Below the pieces are notes generated by a model. That model worked only from the letters and a program-made list of their open reading frames with translations, was not told where the DNA came from and ran no database searches. Made by a program: the position numbers and the translations under genes. Shown in pieces: positions 7,368 through 57,900 of a DNA stretch of 64,000 bases (within the stretch, counting starts at the first letter, position 1; each line of letters opens with the position of its first letter). The DNA is from Macrostomum hystrix (Eukaryota; Animalia; Platyhelminthes): NCBI GenBank assembly GCA_950097015.1, contig CATNEN010000014.1, positions 1,860,001 through 1,924,000 on the forward strand, given 5' to 3'.

Positions 7368-19167
<11,800 letters not shown>

Positions 19168-35324: not shown

Positions 35325-35687
35325 ATGCCCACAGACTCAGAGGAAGAGTACAGCACGGTGGTGCGCAGCCGGCTAAAGCTGAAACTCGGCGACTCCGGCG
35401 TTGAGAGCTCAGGAAAGAAGAAAAGCAAGAAAAAGAAGAAGGACAAGAAGCGCAAGGAGAAGGCTAGCAAGGAGCTGGAGGAGCAGCGGCAGCAGCAGCC
35501 AGAGCTGGAAGTTGACACCAGAACAGCAGCCGAGAAGGCCCAAGCCAGGGTGCTGGAGGCCCGCATGGCCGAGCAGCTGATGAAGCGGGCAGAGAAGTCG
35601 CACAAAGAGCGCATAATGGAGTTCAACGCCAAGCTGGAGAACTGCTCTGAGCACTTCGACATACCGAAGATCTCCTGGACCAAGTAG
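35325..35687 (+). CDS. FAM32A: FAM32A-like splicing-associated protein (intronless, 120 aa)
   Basis: LKLK, Lys-rich tract, RTAAEKA, and C-terminal SHKERIMEFNAKLENCSEHFDIPKISWTK matching the FAM32 signature (HYDIPKVSWTK). AATAAA at 35763. Confidence 0.93.
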   Translation: MPTDSEEEYSTVVRSRLKLKLGDSGVESSGKKKSKKKKKDKKRKEKASKELEEQRQQQPELEVDTRTAAEKAQARVLEARMAEQLMKRAEKSHKERIMEFNAKLENCSEHFDIPKISWTK

Positions 35688-35768: not shown

Positions 35769-36059
35769 CATTTTCACCACCACTCGTTTCTACTTCAAAC
35801 AGTTTAAGCGTGTTTTTACCCTTTTTGCTGTTTCATTTTTTATGTTTGTATTGAGACACTTTTGTTCTTAAACTATATAAATTACAATTGCTGTGTTTGT
35901 TGATTAAATAAATTTAACATGAAAAATCGCGTTGTTAAATAGTTGCGCGTGTCTGTAAATCATTATTCACGAGATCCTGCAATCAAAAGTTAAAAGTTTA
36001 ATAACTTCTGTGCATTTTGCTTCTGTGCCAGTTTATTTCAGTAAAAGATGGGCTGGTCT

Positions 36060-38070
36060 TGAAGGTGGGTTTGTGGATAGATGAGGTAGATGGTGTGTGG
36101 ATAGATGAGGTAGATGGTGTGGTGTGTGGATAGATGAGGTAGATGGTGTGTGGATAGATGAGATAGATGGTGTGGTGTGTGGATAGATGAGGTTGATGGT
36201 GTGGTGTGTGGATGGATGAGGTTGATGGTGGTGTGTGGATAGATGAGGTTGATGGTGGTGTGTGGATGGATGAGGTTGATGGTGTGGTGTGTGGATAGTT
36301 GAGGTTGATGGTGTTGTGTGGATAGATGAGGTTGATGGTGTGGTGTGTGGATGGATGAGGTTGATGGTGGTGTGTGGATGGATGAGGTTGATGGTGTGGT
36401 GTGTGGATAGATGAGGTTGATGGTGTGGTGTGTGGATGGATGAGGTTGATGGTGGTGTGTGGATAGATGAGGTTGATGGTGTGGTGTGTGGATAGATGAG
36501 GTTGATGGTGGTGTGTGGATAGATGAGGTTGATGGTGTGGTGTGTGGATAGATGAGGTTGATGGTGGTGTGTGGATGGATGAGGTTGATGGTGGTGTGTG
36601 GATAGATGAGGTTGATGGTGGTGTGTGGATGGATGAGGTTGATGGTGGTGTGTGGATAGATGAGGTTGATGGTGGTGTGTGGATAGATGAGGTTGATGGT
36701 GTGGTGTGTGGATGGATGAGGTTGATGGTGGTGTGTGGATAGATGAGGTTGATGGTGGTGTGTGGATGGATGAGGTTGATGGTGGTGTGTGGATAGATGA
36801 GGTTGATGGTGTGGTGTGTGGATAGATGAGGTTGATGGTGGTGTGTGGATAGATGAGGTTGATGGTGTGGTGTGTGGATAGATGAGGTTGATGGTGGTGT
36901 GTGGATGGATGAGGTTGATGGTGGTGTGTGGATAGATGAGGTTGATGGTGGTGTGTGGATAGATGAGGTTGATGGTGTGGTGTGTGGATGGATGAGGTTG
37001 ATGGTGGTGTGTGGATAGATGAGGTTGATGGTGGTGTGTGGATGGATGAGGTTGATGGTGGTGTGTGGATAGATGAGGTTGATGGTGGTGTGTGGATAGA
37101 TGAGGTTGATGGTGTGGTGTGTGGATGGATGAGGTTGATGGTGGTGTGTGGATGGATGAGGTTGATGGTGTGGTGTGTGGATAGTTGAGGTTGATGGTGT
37201 TGTGTGGATAGATGAGGTTGATGGTGTGGTGTGTGGATGGATGAGGTTGATGGTGTGGTGTGTGGATGGATGAGGTTGATGGTGGTGTGTGGATAGATGA
37301 GGTTGATGGTGGTGTGTGGATAGATGAGGTTGATGGTGTGGTGTGTGGATAGATGAGGTTGATGGTGTGGTGTGTGGATGGATGAGGTTGATGGTGGTGT
37401 GTGGATAGATGAGGTTGATGGTGTGGTGTGTGGATGGATGAGGTTGATGGTGGTGTGTGGATGGATGAGGTTGATGGTGGTGTGTGGATGGATGAGGTTG
37501 ATGGTGTGGTGTGTGGATAGTTGAGGTTGATGGTGTTGTGTGGATAGATGAGGTTGATGGTGTGGTGTGTGGATGGATGAGGTTGATGGTGTGGTGTGTG
37601 GATGGATGAGGTTGATGGTGGTGTGTGGATAGATGAGGTTGATGGTGGTGTGTGGATAGATGAGGTTGATGGTGTGGTGTGTGGATAGATGAGGTTGATG
37701 GTGTGGTGTGTGGATGGATGAGGTTGATGGTGTGGTGTGTGGATAGATGAGGTTGATGGTGTGGTGTGTGGATGGATGAGGTTGATGGTGGTGTGTGGAT
37801 AGATGAGGTTGATGGTGGTGTGTGGATAGATGAGGTTGATGGTGTGGTGTGTGGATAGATGAGGTTGATGGTGGTGTGTGGATAGATGAGGTTGATGGTG
37901 TGGTGTGTGGATAGATGAGGTAGATGGTGTTGTGTGTGGATAGATGAGGTTGATGGTGTGGTGTGTGGATAGATGAGGTTGATGGTGTGGTGTGTGGATA
38001 GATGAGGTAGATGGTGTGGTGTGTGGATAGATGAGGTAGATGGTGTGGTGTGTGGATAGATGAGGTAGAT
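36060..38070. repeat. Minisatellite, 26/29-bp unit GATGAGGTTGATGGT(GTG)GTGTGTGGATA
   Basis: Direct periodicity. Confidence 0.96.
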
Positions 38071-39124: not shown

Positions 39125-40115
39125 ATGACATCCCCAGTGCAATCCTACATCGACTCAAACGCGTCAATGTCTTCCCCCGGAGGCGGCCGCAAGATCATGA
39201 TCCCGCTGGACGGGTCCAGCCACGCCGAGGAGGCCTTCCGCTTCTACATGGAGAACATTCGTCACGACGGCGACCAGCTGGTGATTGCGCACATCGTCGA
39301 GCCGCCCTCGCTGCCCTCCTTCTCGCTGCGCAGCGGCTTCAATGTGCCCACTGACGAATGGCGCAACATCATCATGGACAGCGGCAAGAAGGCCGCCGCC
39401 ATGGAGCAGGAGATCGCGTACAGGGCCGCCCAGAACAAGATGAAGGTGATCGCAGCCAGCCAGGTTCCTTGTCAACTCAGCCTCTCATTAAACCCGCCTG
39501 TATCCACTCCTGCATGCAGATGGACTTCATAAGGGGGTCGGTGGCAGAGCGGTTAACGCGTTTACCTCACGCACCAAGGTCCCTGAGCTCGATTCCGCGG
39601 CGAGACCACATTTATGTGGGGCGCAGCCGCGGAGAGAAGGCTTGGAGGCTTGTCGGGCAATTGACGCCCCTGAGGACCAACTTAAAAGGCACAGTGAAGT
39701 GTACACTGCCTGACGATGAGAAAGTCAAGGGCAGATGTACACACCTGTGTGAGTGTGTGTCTGCGTACAGTATCTGTGTGCGTGTGTGCTCAGGAGTCAG
39801 CGAAATAGGCAGAATTGCCTCCTGCGGGTCTAGTGTTAAATTATGTGCTATTATTATTATTATTAGATGGACTTCATTGCCGAGACGAGCAAGAAGCCGG
39901 GCGAAGCTCTGGTGGACCTCGCGTGGCGCACCAACTGCCACATGATCGTCATTGGCAGCCGTGGCCAGGGCGACGTCAGGCGCGCCTTCCTGGGCTCCGT
40001 GTCCGACTACATCCTGCACAACAGCCGGCTGCCCGTGACCGTGGTGCCCGCGAAGCGCCGCTTCAGCACCAGCGGCCCGGCCTCAGGACGTGCAAGCTTC
40101 AGCGAGGCCTCCTGA
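39125..40115 (+). CDS. Universal stress protein (USP/UspA family) paralog 1; exons 39125-39445 and 39867-40115
   Basis: KIMIPLDGSSHAEEAF (beta1 motif), VIAHIVEPP, and MIVIGSRGQGDVRRAFLGSVSDYILHNSRLPVTVVP with an intact G-2x-G-9x-GS motif. Phase-0 intron at the same position as in paralog 2. Confidence 0.92.
39531..39864 (+). mobile_element. tRNA-derived SINE, copy 1 (13-bp TSD AGATGGACTTCAT)
   Basis: A-box TGGCAGAGCGG, B-box-like AGCTCGATTCC, shared body and (ATT)n tail. TSD at 39518-39530 and 39865-39877. Homologous to the copies at 55.4 kb and 56.6 kb. Confidence 0.88.
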
Positions 40116-41004: not shown

Positions 41005-41805
41005 AGCCAAGGATCAGGATGGCTGCAGTGACCAGCTGAAGGATCAGGATGGCTGCAGTGACCAGCTGAAGGATCAGGATGGCTGCAGTGACCAGCTGGA
41101 AGATCAGGATGACTGCAGTGACCAGCTGGAAGATCAGGATGACTGCAGTGACCAGCTGGAAGATCAGGATGGCTGCAGTGACCAGCTGAAGGATCAGGAT
41201 GGCTGCAGTGACCAGCTGAAGGATCAGGATGGCTGCAGTGACCAGCTGAAGGATCAGGATGGCTGCAGTGACCAGCTGAAGGATCAGGATGGCTGCAGTG
41301 ACCAGCTGAAGGATCAGGATGGCTGCAGTGACCAGCTGAAGGATCAGGATGGCTGCAGTGACCAGCTGAAGGATCAGGATGGCTGCAGTGACCAGCTGAA
41401 GGATCAGGATGGCTGCAGTGACCAGCTGAAGGATCAAGATGGCTGCAGTGACCAGCTGAAGTATCAGGATGGCTGCAGTGACCAGCTGAAGGATCAGGAT
41501 GGCTGCAGTGACCAGCTGAAGGATCAGGATGGCTGCAGTGATCAGCAGAAGGGGATCGGGATGACTACAGTGATCAGCAGAAGGGTATCGGGATGACTGC
41601 AGTGACCAGCTGAAGGATCAGGATGACTGCAGTGATCAGCAGAAGGGGGATCGGGATGACTACAGTGATCAGCAGAAGGGGATCGGGATGACTGCAGCGA
41701 CCAGCAGAAGGGGATCGGGATGACTACAGTGATCAGCAGAAGGGGATCGGGATGACTGCAGCGACTAGCAGAAGGGGATCAGGATGACTGCAGTGACCTA
41801 CAATA
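41005..41805. repeat. Minisatellite, 30-bp unit GGATCAGGATGGCTGCAGTGACCAGCTGAA between the USP genes
   Basis: Direct periodicity. Confidence 0.95.
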
Positions 41806-42169: not shown

Positions 42170-42470
42170 ATCTCACCTCATTCCCATTCTCTGACCCCCA
42201 CCTCATTCCCATTCTCTGATCCCCGCCTCATTCCCCATTTTCTTATCCCAACCCCATTCCCCATTCTCTGACCCCCACCTCATTCCCCGTTCTCTGATCC
42301 CCGCCTCATTCCCTATTTTCTTATCCCAACCCCATTCCCCATTCTCTGATCCCAACCCCATTCCAAATTCACTGATCCCACACCTCACTCCCCATTCTCT
42401 GATCCCCACCCCATTCACCATACTCTGATCCCCACCTCATCCCCATTCTCTGATCCCCTATAATCCCTAT
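42170..42470. repeat. Degenerate pyrimidine-rich repeat CCCATTCTCTGATCCCC.. immediately upstream of the USP2 ATG
   Basis: Direct periodicity, degenerate. Confidence 0.8.
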
Positions 42471-42491: not shown

Positions 42492-45400
42492 ATGGCATCG
42501 CGAGCAAGCTCCACGGTGATCAACCGTCGAGTTCTGATAGCTCTGGACGGTTCGCAGCGCTCTGAGCACGCCTTCAACTGGTACCTGGCCAACCTCAGGC
42601 GCGATGGCGACCTGGTGGTCGCCGCTCACGTGTTGGAGCCGCCATCGCTGCCATCTTTCTCGCTTAAGAACGGCTTCAATGTGCCGGCCAACGACTGGCG
42701 CGACATCATCTTGGAGAACGGCCGGAAGGCCAAGGAGTTGGAGGAGGAATTCCTTGTCAGGGCTAGCAATCTCAAGCTCAAGGTGAATTGTTATCATAAG
42801 GGCTGCTGAACCTGGCCAGCCCATGTACTTTTCCCGTGGACGGGCGACGCTAAAATTCATAAGTCCACAGCTCTAACCTCAGTCTTTGCATGCTCCGCTT
42901 CAATCCCACTCTACAATTCCACTCTGCAATCCCACTCTGCAATCCCACTCTGCAATCCCACTCTGCAATCCCACTCTGAAATCCCACTCTGCAATTCCAC
43001 TCTGCAATCCCACTCTGCAATCCCACTCTGCAATCCCACTCTGAAATCCCACTCTGCAATCCCACTCGGCAATCCCACTCTGCAATTCCACTCTGCAATC
43101 CCACTCGGCAATCCCACTCTGCAATCCCACTCGGCAATCCCACTCTGCAATCCCACTCGGCAATCCCACTCTGCAATCCCACTCTGCAATCCCACTCTGC
43201 AATCCCACTCTGCAATCCCACTCTGCAATCCCACTCCTTTCTCACCATACTCTCATTCCAATGTTTCACCGAAATCGTATACTGATTCTAAAACTGTAGT
43301 GATCTCACTCCCATCTCATCCTGTAATCCCACCCCAATATCATCCTGTGATCCCACTCCCATCTTATCCCGTAATCTCATTCCAATCTCATCCCAATCTC
43401 ATCCCGTAATCTCACCCCAAACTCATTCCGTAATCTCACTCCAATCTCATTCTGTAATCTAACTCCAATCTCATCCCGTAATCTCATTCCAATCTCATCC
43501 CAATCTTATTCCGTAATCTCACTCCAATCTCATTCTGTAATCTCACTCCAATCTCATTCCGTAATCCCACTCCCATCTCATTCCGTAATCTCACTCCCAT
43601 CTCATTCCGTAATCTCACTCCCATCTCATTCCGTAATCTCACTCCCATCTCATTCCGTAATCTCACTCCAATCTCATTCTGTAATCTCACTCCAATCTCA
43701 TTCTGTAATCTCACTCCAATCTCATTCCGTAATCTTACTCCAATCTCATTCCGTAATCTCACTCCAATCTCATTCCGTAATCTCACTCCCATCTCATTCC
43801 GTAATCTCACTCCAATCTCATTCCGTAATCTCACTCCAATCTCATTCCGTAATCCCACTCCCATCTCATTCCGTAATCTCACTCCCATCTCATTCCGTAA
43901 TCTCACTCCCATCTCATTCCGTAATCTCACTCCCATCTCATTCCGTAATCTCACTCCAATCTCATTCCGTAATCTCACTCCAATCTCATTCTGTAATCTC
44001 ACTCCAATCTCATTCTGTAATCTCACTCCAATCTCATTCCGTAATCTTACTCCAATCTCATTCCGTAATCTCACTCCAATCTCATTCCGTAATCTCACTC
44101 CAATCTCATTCCGTAATCTCACTCCCATCTCATTCCGTAATCTCACTCCAATCTCATTCTGTAATCTCACTCCAATCTCATTCTGTAATCTCACTCCAAT
44201 CTCATTCCGTAATCTTACTCCAATCTCATTCCGTAATCTCACTCCCATCTCATTCCGTAATCTCACTCCAATCTCATTCCGTAATCTCACTCCAATCTCA
44301 TTCCGTAATCCCACTCCCATCTCATTCCGTAATCTCACTCCCATCTCATTCCGTAATCTCACTCCCATCTCATTCCGTAATCTCACTCCCATCTCATTCC
44401 GTAATCTCACTCCAATCTCATTCTGTAATCTCACTCCAATCTCATTCTGTAATCTCACTCCAATCTCATTCCGTAATCTCACTCCAATCTCATTCCGTAA
44501 TCTTACTCCAATCTCATTCCGTAATCTCACTCCAATCTCATTCCGTAATCTCACTCCCATCTCATTCCGTAATCTCACTCCAATCTCATTCCGTAATCTC
44601 ACTCCAATCTCATTCCGTAATCTCACTCCCATCTCATTCTGTAATCTCACTCCCATCTCATTCTGTAATATCACTCCAAACTCATCGTGTAATCTCACAC
44701 CGTAATCTGACACAGATCTTCAACTGTAATACTGTAATGATTTCACGCAACAATCTCAGCCTGAAACTATATCGGTTAGACTCTCAGCAGTGTCCTATGC
44801 TCTAGATTAGCAGCCCCAATCACACAGTTGGTTGTGGGTCACCTGATTTCGCTAATTCTCTCACACGCCATAGAAACTGGGGCTTTTCCTGTGTACAGGT
44901 GCAAACGTTCCTATGCACGAGCTGTTTATTTAAACAAGTGTTTCAAAAGATTTAGCCTCAGATACCAATGCAAAACATGTTTAATGCGTATCACAAGCAC
45001 TGACTAGCCCTTAAACTCTGAACTGTTATCTGAGCTGGGCTGTCTGTAGTATATTGCCTCTTATCTCACAGCTACTCACAGTTCAGAGTATCATTTTACA
45101 CAGCACACTGTATACAAATACATGTACATTTGGATATGCAGTCTGCTGTGTGTTTACAGTTAGGGCCTGAAATCAGTTTTTAGTGAGCCGCTTGAATGAA
45201 CTACAGATCTGGGTTCATGTTCTCTCACATAAGCCAATGGGTCATTGTATTCGTAGTATAGGATGACTACCTAATGGTGATTAGAGTGATGGATTAGTGA
45301 CTACCTGATGGTGATTAGAGTGATGGATTAGTGACTACCTGATGGTGATTAGAGTGAGGGATTAGTGACTACCTGATGGTGATTAGAGTGAGGGATTAGT

Positions 45401-45986
45401 GACTACCTGATGGTGATTAGAGTGAGGGATTAGTGACTACCTGATGGTGATTAGAGTGAGGGATTAGTGACTACCTGATGGTGATTAGAGTGAGGGATTA
45501 GTGACTACCTGATGGTGATTAGAGTGAGGGATTAGTGACTACCTGATGGTGATTAGAGTGAGGGATTAGTGACTACCTGATGGTGATTAGAGTGATGGAT
45601 TAGTGACTACCTGATGGTGATTAGAGTGAGGTAGTGACTATCCAATTTGGTCAAACGGTAGTCCGAGAGGGGATACATGACCATCCGGTCACTCGATGGG
45701 ATGTGGGTGATTGCTAGTGGGTCAGCTTCCGAGCCATATTTATCCCTGTATTTCCGGCCTCCTATTCCAGCTGGAATTCATTGCCGAAAGCCACAAGCGG
45801 CCCGGGGAGGCGCTGACGGACATCGCTTGGCGCACCGGTTGCGACCTGGTTGTCATAGCAACACGTGGCCTCAACGACATCAAACGCGCCTTCCTAGGCT
45901 CGGTGTCGGATTATGTGCTGCGGCATAGCCAGTTGCCCGTGTGCATTGTGCCCGACACTGCGGCTGCTGATGAGGCGCACAAGTGA
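42492..45986 (+). CDS. Universal stress protein paralog 2; exons 42492-42782 and 45771-45986
   Basis: RVLIALDGSQRSEHAF, AAHVLEPPSLPSFSL and VVIATRGLNDIKRAFLGSVSDYVLRHSQLPVCIVP. AAG|GTGAAT ... TTCCAG|CTG junction in phase 0. Confidence 0.92.
42900..43235. repeat. Minisatellite, 13-bp unit GCAATCCCACTCT (USP2 intron)
   Basis: Direct periodicity. Confidence 0.95.
43300..44710. repeat. Minisatellite, 24-bp unit CTCCAATCTCATTCCGTAATCTCA (USP2 intron)
   Basis: Direct periodicity; explains the 409-aa GVRLRNEI ORF. Confidence 0.96.
45270..45640. repeat. Minisatellite, 34-bp unit CTACCTGATGGTGATTAGAGTGAGGGATTAGTGA (USP2 intron)
   Basis: Direct periodicity. Confidence 0.95.
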
Positions 45987-46139: not shown

Positions 46140-47040
46140 GCAGAGCTGACACAGTGGCTGACAGACACAGATGGAGCTGACACAGTGGCTGACAGACACA
46201 GATGGAACTGACACAGTGGCTGACAGACACATATGGAACTGACACAGTGGCTGACAGACACAGATGGAACTGACACAGTGGCTGACAGACACATATGGAA
46301 CTGACACAGTGGCTGACAGACACAGATGGAACTGACACAGTAGCTGACAGACACAGATGGAACTGACACAGTAGCTGACAGACACAGATGGAACTGACAC
46401 AGCAGCTGACAGACACAGATGGAACTGACACAGCAGCTGACAGACACAGATTGAACTGACACAGCAGCTGACAGACACAGATGGAACTGACACAGCAGCT
46501 GACAGACACAGATGGAACTGACGCAGAAGCTGACAGACACAGATGGAACTGACACAGCAGCTGACAGACACAGATGGAACTGACGCAGAAGCTGACAGAC
46601 ACAGATGGAACTGACACAGTGGCTGACAGACACAGATGGAACTGACACAGTGGCTGACAGACACATATGGAACTGACACAGTGGCTGACAGACACATATG
46701 GAACTGACACAGTGGCTGACAGACACATATGGAACTGACACAGTGGCTGACAGACACAGATGGAACTGACACAGTGGCTTACAGACACAGATTGAACTGA
46801 CACAGTGGCTTACAGACACATATGGAACTGACACAGTGGCTGACAGACACAGATTGAACTGACACAGTGGCTGACAGACACAGATGGAACTGACACAGTG
46901 GCTGACAGACACATATGGAACTGACACAGTGGCTGACAGACACAGATGGAACTGACACAGTGGCTGACAGACACATATGGAACTGACACAGTGGCTGACA
47001 GACACAGATGGAACAGACACAGCAGCTGACAGACACTTCC
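46140..47040. repeat. Minisatellite, 31-bp unit GGAACTGACACAGTGGCTGACAGACACAGAT between the convergent USP2 and SKP1 ends
   Basis: Direct periodicity. Confidence 0.96.
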
Positions 47041-47810: not shown

Positions 47811-48771
47811 TCACTTCTCCTCGCACCACTCGTTCTCCTTGCGCACCCGCTCCAGCTCCTCGGGCGTGAAGTCGCATTTGATGTTGAAGGTCTTGCGGAT
47901 CTCCTCCGGGCTCTTGCCCTTGATCATGTTCGCCACCGTCTTGCAGGCCACGTCCAACAGCCCCTTGATGTCCAAGTAGTTCGCGGCCAGGATGATCTCA
48001 AACAGAGTGCCCTGGTCCACCTGCGGATGGGGACAGCGGAGCGATGCTGAGCTCTTCTATGCCCCAACCCAGCTTAACTGCTCACGGAAACACCACTCGA
48101 AATCCCACAATTTCATCTGACTATGTGAAATCCCACAGTCTCAACTGACTAGTTGAAATCCCAAAATTTCATCTGACTAGTTGAAATCACATCTGACTGG
48201 CTGAAATCCTACAATCACACCTATGTGAAATCCTACAATCACACCAATGTGAAATCCTACAATCACACCTATGTGAAATCCTACAATCACACCTATGTGA
48301 AATCCTACAATCACACCAATGTGAAATCCTACAATCACACCTATGTGAAATTCTATAATCAAACCTAGCTATTTGAAATCCTGGTCGGACTAACGAAGAT
48401 ACGGAAACTAGGTTAATTAGCTGTCGAATAATTTTTTTACTAGTTAGAACCCCAGAACTAGTCAATTATAGTTAATTAAGGTGGCTTCGCACCTTAAGAA
48501 ACTCCTGATCCCAGGTGGGAATGTCGTCAGTGCGTCGCTCCTTGTACTCATCCTCCTCAACAGGCGGCGGGTCGTCCTTGTGGTAGGTGCACCAGGCGAT
48601 CACCTTCTTGAGGATGGCGGCATTGACATTGGGCAGGGGGACTTCCTCGTCGCCCTCACTCGACACAGACATGTCCTCCAGCATAGTCTTGATGGTGCCG
48701 GACTGCTTGGCGATCTCAATATCGACCTCGAAGATTTCACTGTCGCTAGACTGCAGCTTGATGTTCGGCAT
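47811..48771 (-). CDS. SKP1: SKP1 (SCF ubiquitin-ligase adaptor); exons 48493-48771 and 47811-48020 (162 aa)
   Basis: [42 protein letters not shown]|[55 protein letters not shown] is canonical SKP1. Confidence 0.98.
48110..48365. repeat. Minisatellite, 24-bp unit GTGAAATCCTACAATCACACCTAT (SKP1 intron)
   Basis: Direct periodicity. Confidence 0.92.
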
Positions 48772-50600
48772 GGTTGCGAGTCAGTCCTTGCTCTGCAAAG
48801 ATCTCGATTCGCAGTTCTTCAATTTCACAATTGAAAATAGAATATTACAAATGAAAAGAATATTGTATGGAAAAATGTACTGTATACACTATCAATCATA
48901 GCCCACAATGGAACTAGACTAGACAATATTTTTTATATAATAATACTTGTGCTTTTTAGCAACTAGCTACATTAATATTGTTGTCTAGATTCTCATCTTA
49001 TAACATTGATTTCTTACAGTATCTTTTGAACCAAAACATGGCAAGGCCAGACTATCATGCTGATTCTGACCATCAGAAATCATCTAATGGCTATTAGAAC
49101 TAACACCCATCACAGTGCCTCAATTCTGCTATCAATTTCACAATTATCAGCATCGCATATCATTTGGAGTAGTGGTATTAATTAAGCAAGATGCCATAAG
49201 GATAGGCTGGGCATTATTGACATGGCACCATGTGGATAATTCTAGAATTATTGGCACAGGTATCAGGTATGTCATCATCATCATCCATGGGTCAAGAGGT
49301 ACATAATCTAAGGCGTATAGCAGAATATGCAAATAAAACAATCAGTACTCTTATGTTTAGAATACACAAAGAACATGACAATGATAAATGCTACTATTTT
49401 GTTGTGCACCTAATTATTAATTTATTGCCTAGGCTATGGGTATAATATAGGCAATATAACTAGCTAATTAGGTCTTTATTTCATATTAAAGATAGCTAGC
49501 CTATATATGATATTGGCTAACCTACTATACAATGCAGTACATATTGTAATCAGAGACAAACATGAAAAAATAGCCTCTTTCTTAGAAATTGTTTTCCAAA
49601 AAAGAAATACTTAAATGTTAAAATGCACCACTTTTGTTTTAATGCACCATTGGTTTTAATGCAATTGAGATAGGGCTACGTTTATTTTCTTTGAAATATG
49701 TTACTTTTTGTTTGAATACACTTTGATTTGTTAAAATACACCAAATTTTTTTATGCACTGAATGCAGCAAAATAAAAAAATTATAATGAAGTGGAGAAGG
49801 GGAGTGAAAAAACAGTATAAATACATGAGTGAAAGGGAGAAGAAATTAACCCTCGTTTGAGACTGTGTTCAGAATAAAGAAAGCTTGAATCTTGAAGTGT
49901 TTGTGTTGAAATTATTTGAAAGAGACATTGTAAAAGAGAAGTAAACAGAGTAAAGGAGAGCTGTAAATCTAGATCCACTGGTAAAGCCCAGGATGGACTG
50001 AAGATTTGAATGAAGATTGAATGAAGAGTACTTGAAAAGTGATAAAGACAGATAAAGACTGATAAAGAGTACTTATAGAAATAATACAGTAAAGTTATAA
50101 GTAAAAAGTGAATATAGAGGATAGATACCTGCCATATTGAATGTATAATGCTACGAGATTAAATACATAAACATTACCAATTAAATTTGAAATAAGAAAG
50201 TGCATAAAGCAAATAATTAAAAACATTCATAACATTGATATAAAGACAGTATTCAAATAAAGTGTATAAGCACTACAACAAACTTTGGAGATAACTATTA
50301 TAAAATAACCCTGCAACAACTTGGTGGCATTATTAGAATTGAGTTTAGTAAGAAACTAGCAAGTTTTGCCCCCCTTTAGGGAGCAGAAATATTTTTAATT
50401 CGTCTTGTATATACTCTTTAGCAGCTGTATTTTCAGCTTTTTTAAGATCCACCAATTGACAAAAATCCGACCATTGACAATGATCCCACAGTTGAAAATG
50501 ATCCCACAGTTGACAATGATCTCCAGCACAACTATATCTCTGTGAACAAATAAATTCTAATCAAAATATAATATTATATAACTATTCCCACCTTTACTAA

Positions 50601-54944: not shown

Positions 54945-57900
54945 ATGTTCACACACGACCCGGCGCTGGATCGGGAGCTGCTTGACAGCATCGATCAGGC
55001 CTATTTTGATACAGATCAGGACTCCAGCAGGTTAGAGATTCTGGTAAGCATCCGGTGCTATGTTTTGTATGTTTCATTTCAATATTATGTTTGTTTAACA
55101 TCTGAATCAATTCTTGTTCGATAAGCTACTTTACTCAACCAACTCAACCTCAGAAATTCATAGAGACCTCGGACTCAGCCGCAGACACTGAGGGCATGCG
55201 GCTGAAGATGGAGCAGCTGAAGCGGCAGCACAAGGCGGTTGCTAAGCGAGTCTCCGAGCTGGTGCTGCAGAAGCACCCTGACTATGCCCAGGAGCTGCAG
55301 CGGGTCATGCAGTTGCAGCGTTCGCTGTTAGAGGCCTTCAAAATTTCTAAAGCAGCCCGAATGTAAGACACGCCGCACCTTAACTGCTTTTTAGCGTGAT
55401 TTCTCACCGAATCTCCCAAATCCCACTCATCCTCAATGTCTCTCCCCAGGGGGGTCGGTGGCAGAGCGGTTATCGCGTTTGCCTCTCGCACCACGGTCCC
55501 TAAGTTCGATTCCACGGCGAGGCCACATTTATTTGGGGCGCAGCCGCGGAGAGAAGGCTTGGGGGCTTGTCGTGCAATTTACGCCCTTGAGGGCCAACCT
55601 CCAACAGGCACAGTGAAAGTGTACACTGCCTGACGATGAGAAAGTCCGGGGAAGATGTACACACCTGTGTGAGCGTATGCCTGCGTACAGTATCTGTGTG
55701 CGTGTGTGCTCAGGAGTCAGCGAAATGGGCAGAATGGCCTCCTCGCTGGCTGCGGGTCTAGTGTCACTAAATGATGTGCCACTTCCCGCAGCCCTCCTGC
55801 AATTATTATTATTATTATTATTGTCTCTCCCAAGTCCCAACCGACTCCCATCTCTCTGGCACTCATCCCCAATGTCACTCCCAACCGACTCCCATCTCTC
55901 TGGCACTCATCCCCAATGTCACTCCCAACCGACTCCCATCTCTCTGGCACTCGTCCCCAATGTCACTCCCAACCGACTCCCATCTCTCTGGCACTCATCC
56001 CCAATGTCACTCCCAACCGACTCCCATCTCTCTGGCACTCGTCCCCAATGTCACTCCCAACCGACTCCCATCTCTCTGGCACTCGTCCCCAATGTCACTC
56101 CCAACCGACTCCCATCTCTCTGGCACTCATCCCCAATGTCACTCCATTGCTCGCAGGTCTCTCCGCACCGCGGCGCACACGAACCTGCACTCCTCGGTGA
56201 AGGTGCTGCTTTTCCGGCGTCGCCAGCAGCGCCTGCAGTCTTTGCAGGCCACGCTGGACCAGACTCGGGCATTGTGCGACGCGGACAAGCGGCTGAAGGA
56301 GCTCCTAGAGGAGGAGAACTTTGCCGCCGCAATTCAGCTGTGCCAGGAGTGCCAGCGAGCGGCGGCTCTGCCGATGTACCGCGGCCTGGCCTGCGTCCGC
56401 GAGCTGGCTGCCAAGCTGCAGGACACGGCGGTGATGACGGAGGAGAGCCTGGACCAGGCCATGTGCCGCATGGCTGCTGCTGGCTTCAACTTCACCCTGT
56501 ACGACCGGATACAGAAGGCCTACTGGTGAGGCTTGACTTGTCACTGCTGCCTCACCTGATGATCCCACAGCCTCCTCACCATCTCATCTTGTCCTGTCTT
56601 CCTTCATACTCTCTGCCTTTCTCTTGTCTTCTTTTCACATCATTTGGTGACACTTGACCCGCAGCCAGCGAGGAGGCCATTCTGCCCATTTCGCTGACTC
56701 CTGAGCACACACGCACACAGATACTGTACGCAGGCACACGCTCACACAGGTGTGTACATCTGCCCTGACTTTCTCATCGTCAGGCAGTGTACACTTTCAC
56801 TGTGCCTTGGAGGTTGGCCCTCAAGGGCGTAAATTGCACTACAAGCCCCCAAGCCTTCTCTCCGCGGCTGCGCCCCAAATAAATGTGGCCTCTCTGCCAC
56901 CTACCCCCCTTCCTATCCTCCCTTTCTCCTATTTCCTTAATCCACCCTCCCCAATCCGCTCTCTGTAAACGCCTCTAATCCTGTCTCCGTTATCCCGTCT
57001 CCCTTATCCTGACTTGCCTAATCCCCTTTCTCTAATACCCTCTCTCTAATCCACTCCCTAATCCTCTCTCCCTAATCCACTCTCCCTAATCCACTCTCAC
57101 TAATCCACTCTCCCTAATCCACTCTCACTAATCCACTCTCCCTAATCCACTCTCCCTAATCCACTCTCACTAATCCACACTCCCTAATCCACTCTCACTA
57201 ATCCACTCTCACTAATCCACTCTCACTAATCCACTCTCCCTAATCCACTCTCACTAATCCACACTCCCTAATCCACTCTCACTAATCCACTCTCACTAAT
57301 CCACTCTCACTAATCCACTTTCTCTAAACCCTAATCCAACCTCACTAAATAATCCAATCTCTCTAATCCCGTCTCCCTAATACACTCTCCCTTATCTGCT
57401 CTCCCTAATAATACAGTCTCTAATCCCATTTTTCTAACCCTATCTCCCTAATCAACTTCCCTGATCCCTTTTCACAATTCACTATCCAAAATGTCCTACT
57501 ATACCGCTTTCTTCCTTCCATATATTTAATTTTTATTCGTACCTTTTTTTCTTCTCCGCATTTCTCCACACATCCTCTAAGCCTCTTAAAGCGCCCGAAG
57601 TCGATTGGCGAGCTTTAGCCAGTGAGTGCTTTTGGCAGGATTGGATGAACTTTGTATAAGCTCATATATCTCCCTGTATTTGTGGGCCAGTTATCTAGAA
57701 AACAAACTGTTCTACTCACAGTAGCACATTTCGTATTTTATTACCATTACTTTACACCTGCCGTGTGCATTCATCGCTAACAAAGTGCACTTCAATATCT
57801 CGCAGCCTGCTGGGTAAGTCGCAGTCCGCATTCGACCAGCTGCACATGCACTTTACCAGCACCCTGCACAATGCGGCCTTCCAAATTGTCCTCGGCTACA

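Follow-up and report, generated by a model that had tools for sequence, protein, structure and literature searches.

A SINE insertion with a target-site duplication across the 3' splice site of a universal stress protein gene in Macrostomum hystrix

The stretch of Macrostomum hystrix DNA analysed here, referred to below as the window, is 64 kb long and includes a two-exon universal stress protein (USP) gene, USP1, whose intron lies in phase 0 (Table 1). The exons of USP1 were used as separate Pfam queries, and both matched the Usp family (PF00582) above the curated cut-off, exon 1 with E=5e-7 over profile positions 3-48 and exon 2 with E=1e-14 over profile positions 87-141. Exon 2, read from 39867 (MDFIAETSKKPGEALVDLAWRTNCHMIVIGSRGQGDVRRAFLGSVS..., translated MDFIAETS...), contains the ATP-binding motif G-2x-G-9x-G(S/T) in the form GSRGQGDVRRAFLGS. 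When 39445 is joined to 39867 the predicted protein reads ...NKMK/MDFIAET (junctions are marked with a slash throughout), as in the Macrostomum lignano protein P0001 (...KKMK/MDYIVEA).

The USP locus is unusually rich in tandem arrays. A G/T-rich minisatellite of 2 kb (36059-38070; 27/56-nt unit, about 72 copies, 92% matches) is found about 1 kb upstream of USP1 and accounts for the GC skew of 0.98 in the bin at that position, and the spacers around the USP genes contain minisatellites at 41009-41798, 42174-42458 and 46146-47036, with 30-, 26/78- and 31-nt units. Elsewhere in the window, an ORF at 35325-35684 (+) matched Pfam FAM32A, and an ORF at 7371-8543 (-) that is probably an exon of a larger gene contained two PDZ domains.

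Table 1. Positions in the window of the features discussed; putative splice signals are listed with the candidate acceptor to which they would belong.
Feature	Position	Strand	Remarks
USP1 exon 1	39125..39445	+	107 codons, ATG to ...AAQNKMK (translation), then donor AAG/GTGATC
Ancestral USP1 intron (reconstructed), 74 nt	39446..39519	+	Donor AAG/GTGATC; ends in proximal acceptor CAG
Proximal candidate acceptor	AG 39518-19		Branch point: strict yUnAy consensus CTCAT, A at 39487, 32 nt upstream; tract -20 to -3: native C/T-rich, 67% pyrimidine; last three intron bases CAG; AG-free zone 39480-39517; intron made 74 nt
Target-site duplication (TSD), upstream copy	39518..39530	+	Acceptor AG plus ATGGACTTCAT
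SINE, sense orientation, 334 nt	39531..39864	+	Box A/B-like head, body common to two other copies, (ATT)5 tail at 39850-39864
Distal candidate acceptor	AG 39865-66		Branch point: relaxed motif UUAU only (4/5 match), A at 39843, 23 nt upstream; tract -20 to -3: U-rich ATT tail, 67% pyrimidine, 61% U; last three intron bases UAG; AG-free zone 39834-39864; intron made 421 nt
TSD, downstream copy	39865..39877	+	Its AG is the distal candidate acceptor
USP1 exon 2	39867..40115	+	82 codons plus stop (40113-40115)
TGA closing the proximal-acceptor frame	39943..39945	+	In the last exon
USP2 exon 1	42492..42782	+	Ends ...NLKLK, then GTGAAT; Pfam Usp match
USP2 exon 2	45771..45986	+	LEFIAES...; Pfam Usp match
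SINE copy 2, full	55450..55824	+	88.2% identity to USP1 SINE (BLASTN), (ATT)8 tail, own flanking duplication
SINE copy 3, rearranged	56636..56908	-	88.0% identity to USP1 SINE (BLASTN); head mostly deleted, no ATT tail

The element between the candidate acceptors of USP1 is short, non-coding and dispersed, and has box A/B-like motifs, a simple-repeat tail and flanking direct repeats, all of which identify it as a SINE. Its head, which starts GGGGTCGGTGGCAGAGCGGTTAACGCG..., includes a box A-like sequence (TGGCAGAGCGG) matching TRGCNNAGTGG at 10 of 11 positions and a box B-like sequence (GCTCGATTCC) matching the box B consensus GGTTCGANNCC, both at the level of motifs. A search of the element for a tRNA using ARAGORN and Rfam (E<=1) returned no match, and the fold of the head was no better than that of shuffled sequences. 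The A/B-box promoter motifs are the one feature that suggests a tRNA-type origin.

Three copies belonging to this SINE family were found in the window, and the copy in USP1 is about 88% identical to each of the other two. The box B of copy 2, GTTCGATTCC, is closer to the consensus than that of the USP1 copy. Copy 2 is also flanked by a duplication of its own, TGTCTCTCCC(C/A)AG, of 10-13 bp, and the SINE thus generates duplications of about 13 bp. Copies 2 and 3, which are in opposite orientation, 0.8 kb apart and about 3% mutually different, bracket a tandem array with a 44-nt unit (55835-56145). Ten long ORFs in the window were scanned for a reverse transcriptase belonging to a partner LINE, and none was found among them.

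A paralogue, USP2, is located 2.4 kb downstream of USP1. The intron of USP2 is at the same codon and in the same phase as that of USP1, but is 2988 nt long and consists almost entirely of minisatellite arrays (42901-44713 and 45264-45631, with 13-, 24/48/72- and 34-nt units). An ORF of 409 aa within this intron (43484-44713, -) with a weak match to DUF1016_N sits in a minisatellite and was rejected as spurious. A word-based protein search using exon 1 of USP1 (74-236 aa) retrieved only two proteins, both from M. lignano, namely P0001 (78% identity) and P0002 (68% identity). The corresponding genomic loci, L001 for P0001 and L002/L003 for P0002, have an intron at the USP1 codon, with the junctions AAG/GTAATT ... 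CGCCAAG/ATGGACTACATC in L001 and AAG/GTGCCG ... CCCCTCAG/ATGGAGTTCATC in L003. The intron position of USP1 is thus common to USP2, L001 and L003. The L001 and L003 introns do not contain the SINE and each has one AG/ATGGA junction. As the M. lignano homologues have an intron here and are free of the SINE, the intron position is older than the SINE.

The M. lignano locus L001 is the closest to USP1, with nucleotide identities of 83.7% in exon 1 and 81.6% in exon 2 compared with about 74% to USP2, and a downstream Skp1 neighbour is common to L001 and the USP locus. Synonymous divergence (dS) between the two species is about 0.5. The Skp1 homologue, downstream of the USP pair at 47811-48773 (-), has two alignable blocks with 82-91% nucleotide identity to L001, and there is one USP gene in front of Skp1 in M. 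lignano and two in M. hystrix. The intron of the M. lignano gene for P0002 is filled by a GGAATCCGGGACTTC-like tandem repeat (L003 5255-5680). Growth of the intron at this position has taken a different route in each gene copy.

Exactly two copies of the 13-mer AGATGGACTTCAT are present in the window, and they directly adjoin the SINE, one at each end. The repeat is exactly 13 nt in length, as the bases outside the copies are unlike (c/t before, a/t after). Deletion of the SINE together with one 13-mer leaves an intact gene with a 74-nt intron, which places the staggered nicks of retroposition 2 nt into the intron and 11 nt into the exon, counted from their border. 'Landed in the exon' and 'landed in the acceptor' are consequently two wordings of one event. 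Because the SINE-free homologues have a single AG/ATGGA junction at the conserved intron position, the 13-mer is a TSD that straddles the acceptor and comprises its AG and 11 exon bases, and an ancestral intron of 74 nt ending at 39519 is supported. The original prediction had described the duplicated 13-mer as the acceptor AG plus the first 11 coding nucleotides on either side of the SINE, had given the ancestral intron this same length and end, and had placed the intron of the paralogue USP2 at the matching codon (K/LEFIAES). The exact positions of the 13-mers were recovered here, the intron coordinates agree, and the introns of both USP2 (...LKLK/LEFIAES) and the M. lignano genes are at the matching codon. 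The SINE-free relatives were examined for a pair of 13-mers, and the M. lignano homologues were found to have one AG/ATGGAC or AG/ATGGAG junction, not two, an outcome that favours the prediction.

That the two 13-mers are a chance repeat or an assembly artefact, and not a TSD, is scarcely credible. Chance repetition is a general possibility, and in shuffled sequences a 13-mer with at most one mismatch was matched a mean of 0.24 times per window. However, the copies here adjoin the exact ends of a member of a repeat family, the other full copy of which also has a flanking duplication of 10-13 bp, and removal of the SINE and one copy leaves the gene intact with its intron at the conserved position.

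USP1 therefore has two candidate acceptors, the proximal and distal AG of Table 1, which are 347 nt apart. Both had been predicted at this spacing, and both AG dinucleotides are present in the sequence. A further 27 AG dinucleotides lie between them, and the distal AG would as a result be unreachable by scanning from the old branch point and needs a branch point of its own. Judged by these sequence signals, the proximal acceptor is apparently no weaker than the distal one. The longer intron would be ordinary in length, given that mean intron lengths in Macrostomum genomes are 558-1114 nt (PMC10468722).

Pairing of the old pyrimidine tract with the G-rich head of the SINE in a hairpin was predicted (-25.8 kcal/mol, z=-2.0), and the fold of the whole intron was not unusual (z=-1.2). 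Masking of the proximal site by RNA structure was considered and rejected, with an unpaired probability of 0.31 at that site compared to 0.34 in a SINE-free reconstruction.

The predicted products of the two acceptors differ. Only the exact distal AG would restore the USP frame, as upstream of it the exon 2 frame contains a stop (TAG, 39864-66) that bars any acceptor further upstream from doing so. From the proximal AG, the frame starting at 39520 is open for 141 codons, passing through the SINE, and is shifted when it re-enters exon 2 (347 mod 3 = 2). The product would consist of the N-terminal half of the USP and 141 further residues, and would have no ATP-binding motif. Since its stop is in the last exon, exon-junction-dependent decay is not expected. 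These products are in line with the original prediction, in which the distal AG gives an intact USP with the SINE held in the intron and the proximal AG gives a product open through the SINE with 141 residues, a stop ending at 39945, no ATP-binding motif and no obvious susceptibility to exon-junction-dependent decay. The product made by joining 39445 to 39867 is predicted to be in frame, translation from the proximal AG agrees in each respect, and the position of the stop bears out the last point. Searches with the tail of 141 aa gave neither a Pfam match nor a relative among recorded proteins of 107-341 aa.

An equally open frame through the SINE was seen in just 0.2% of mononucleotide shuffles, and selection for an open frame was considered as a possible cause. 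It was rejected because the equivalent frame in SINE copy 2 is nearly open too, with a single stop. The open frame is thus a trait of the SINE family and not a sign of a selected exonised product.

There is no stop and no frameshift in USP1 exon 2, whose dN/dS relative to M. lignano L001 was 0.226, compared with 0.185 in exon 1. Exon 2 is therefore without relaxed constraint, though the insertion may be too young for constraint to decide. When the differences in exon 2 were polarised on the dN/dS alignment with L003 and USP2 as outgroups, five lineage-private replacements were found in M. hystrix and five in M. lignano. The SINE in USP1 has several private indels and 15 private substitutions in 249 comparable columns (6%), compared to 3 and 5 in the other copies. 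If all of this divergence had arisen after insertion, about 8 extra replacements would be expected in a neutral exon 2, and no excess was seen (Poisson P about 0.01 for <=5 replacements when 13 are expected, a value that assumes that all SINE-private changes are post-insertion). The 6% private divergence may instead represent a subfamily difference rather than age, and the perfect TSD (13/13) and pure (ATT)5 tail suggest that the insertion is young. With a young insertion, an intact exon 2 says nothing about acceptor use. Two conditions would fairly account for this: a young insertion, or continued selection on exon 2, for which the distal acceptor would be needed.

We favour an explanation in which the SINE has been intronised through use of the distal AG, with some leakage to the proximal AG, and put its probability at roughly 55%. 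The main rival is a disruptive insertion, in which the proximal acceptor wins and all of the mRNA includes the SINE and the frameshift, making USP1 a young loss-of-function allele that is tolerated through its paralogues. This is possible, though the less probable of the two. The proximal site retains a strict branch point together with its tract and CAG, its intron would be the shorter one, and the distal branch point is a match at only four of five positions. The perfect TSD and tail would also fit an event so recent that exon 2 has had no time to decay, and the paralogue USP2 is close by and could cover the function. Against disruption, exon 2 has no excess of changes and no indel, though the SINE carries several private indels and its 6% of private substitutions, and native exon extends for just 11 nt beyond the proximal AG.

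A regulated alternative 3' splice-site switch, in which the ratio of the two acceptors depends on stress and the isoform with the SINE-encoded tail is functional, appears very unlikely. The presence of one donor with two plausible competing acceptors would suit a switch, as would the 141-codon open frame of the proximal product with its stop in the last exon. However, as the single stop in copy 2 indicates, the open frame is a property of the family, and the tail has neither a Pfam match nor a relative among the recorded proteins in the size range searched. The proximal product also has no ATP-binding motif, and there is no evidence of conservation. Equally speculative is a broader proposal in which the 3' end of the SINE would be a portable 3' splice-site module, such that copies with an AG-bearing TSD are spliced out, and in which both acceptors of USP1 would be used at a stress-responsive ratio to yield a SINE-tailed USP isoform; this we regard as improbable.

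The favoured course of events is as follows. A SINE with a tRNA-type promoter was copied into USP1, probably by LINE-type machinery via target-primed reverse transcription. The two staggered nicks, 13 bp apart, were made 2 nt upstream of the border between intron 1 and exon 2 and 11 nt inside exon 2, and gap filling then duplicated the AG and ATGGACTTCAT on either side of the SINE. The 3' end of the SINE, which directly precedes the downstream copy, would give the distal acceptor a branch point near the consensus, a U-rich (ATT)5 tract free of AG, and UAG. Splicing of the unchanged donor at 39446 to the distal AG would remove a 421-nt intron and restore the original mRNA exactly, and we infer that distal splicing is what would keep USP1 functional, the SINE having become part of the intron. 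Neither the old acceptor nor its native branch point was altered by the insertion, and the old acceptor probably still captures part of the transcripts. Such transcripts would encode the N-terminal half of the USP followed by 141 mostly junk residues, and would be expected to escape exon-junction-dependent decay.

The consequences depend on the acceptor used. If it is the distal acceptor, a retroposon hit on an exon border would have been neutralised at once, as the duplication carries the splice site along, and the whole element would have been added to the intron's length. Should the proximal site prevail, this is an ordinary gene-disrupting insertion. Intron growth or gain from mobile elements has so far been described chiefly for DNA transposons of protists and algae. 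No account of TSD-duplicated acceptors in Macrostomum came up in literature searches.

Several features of the locus are found in known systems. In introner elements and other transposon-derived introns, the TSD supplies a splice site, and in the Micromonas introner family IE1 the 3' AG is co-opted from the TSD (both reviewed in PMC11282704). As with introners, the duplicated target in USP1 gives an AG beside the end of the element, and splicing at the predicted distal site would leave one TSD copy and restore the message. Unlike introners, which are DNA transposons, the element in USP1 is a retroposon, and no new intron would be gained. Instead, an existing intron would go from 74 to 421 nt with its donor unchanged, through a distal site that is itself predicted.

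Sorek in 2002 and Lev-Maor in 2003 reportedly described exonisation in which the poly-T of an antisense Alu provides a new 3' splice site with its pyrimidine tract. The likeness to USP1 is that the simple-sequence end of a SINE forms the U-rich tract before an AG. The differences are that the tract in USP1 is the sense-strand (ATT)n tail, that both the AG and the exon come from the gene itself, through the duplication, and that, provided the proximal site is not used, the SINE would be intronised and not exonised.

Human Alu elements have also inserted into splice acceptors, an example being NF1 c.1642-1_1642 (PMC3219598). In such cases, as in the reading favoured here, a retroelement arrived at an intron/exon border by target-primed reverse transcription, with a TSD spanning the acceptor. 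The human insertions came to notice through splicing defects in cDNA sequenced from patients, whereas USP1 may survive its insertion, and the allele is that of the reference genome of the species. The USP1 locus combines features of introners and of the NF1 Alu insertion, in that the TSD of a retroposon has duplicated an existing acceptor, and it could have lengthened an intron in this way without cost.
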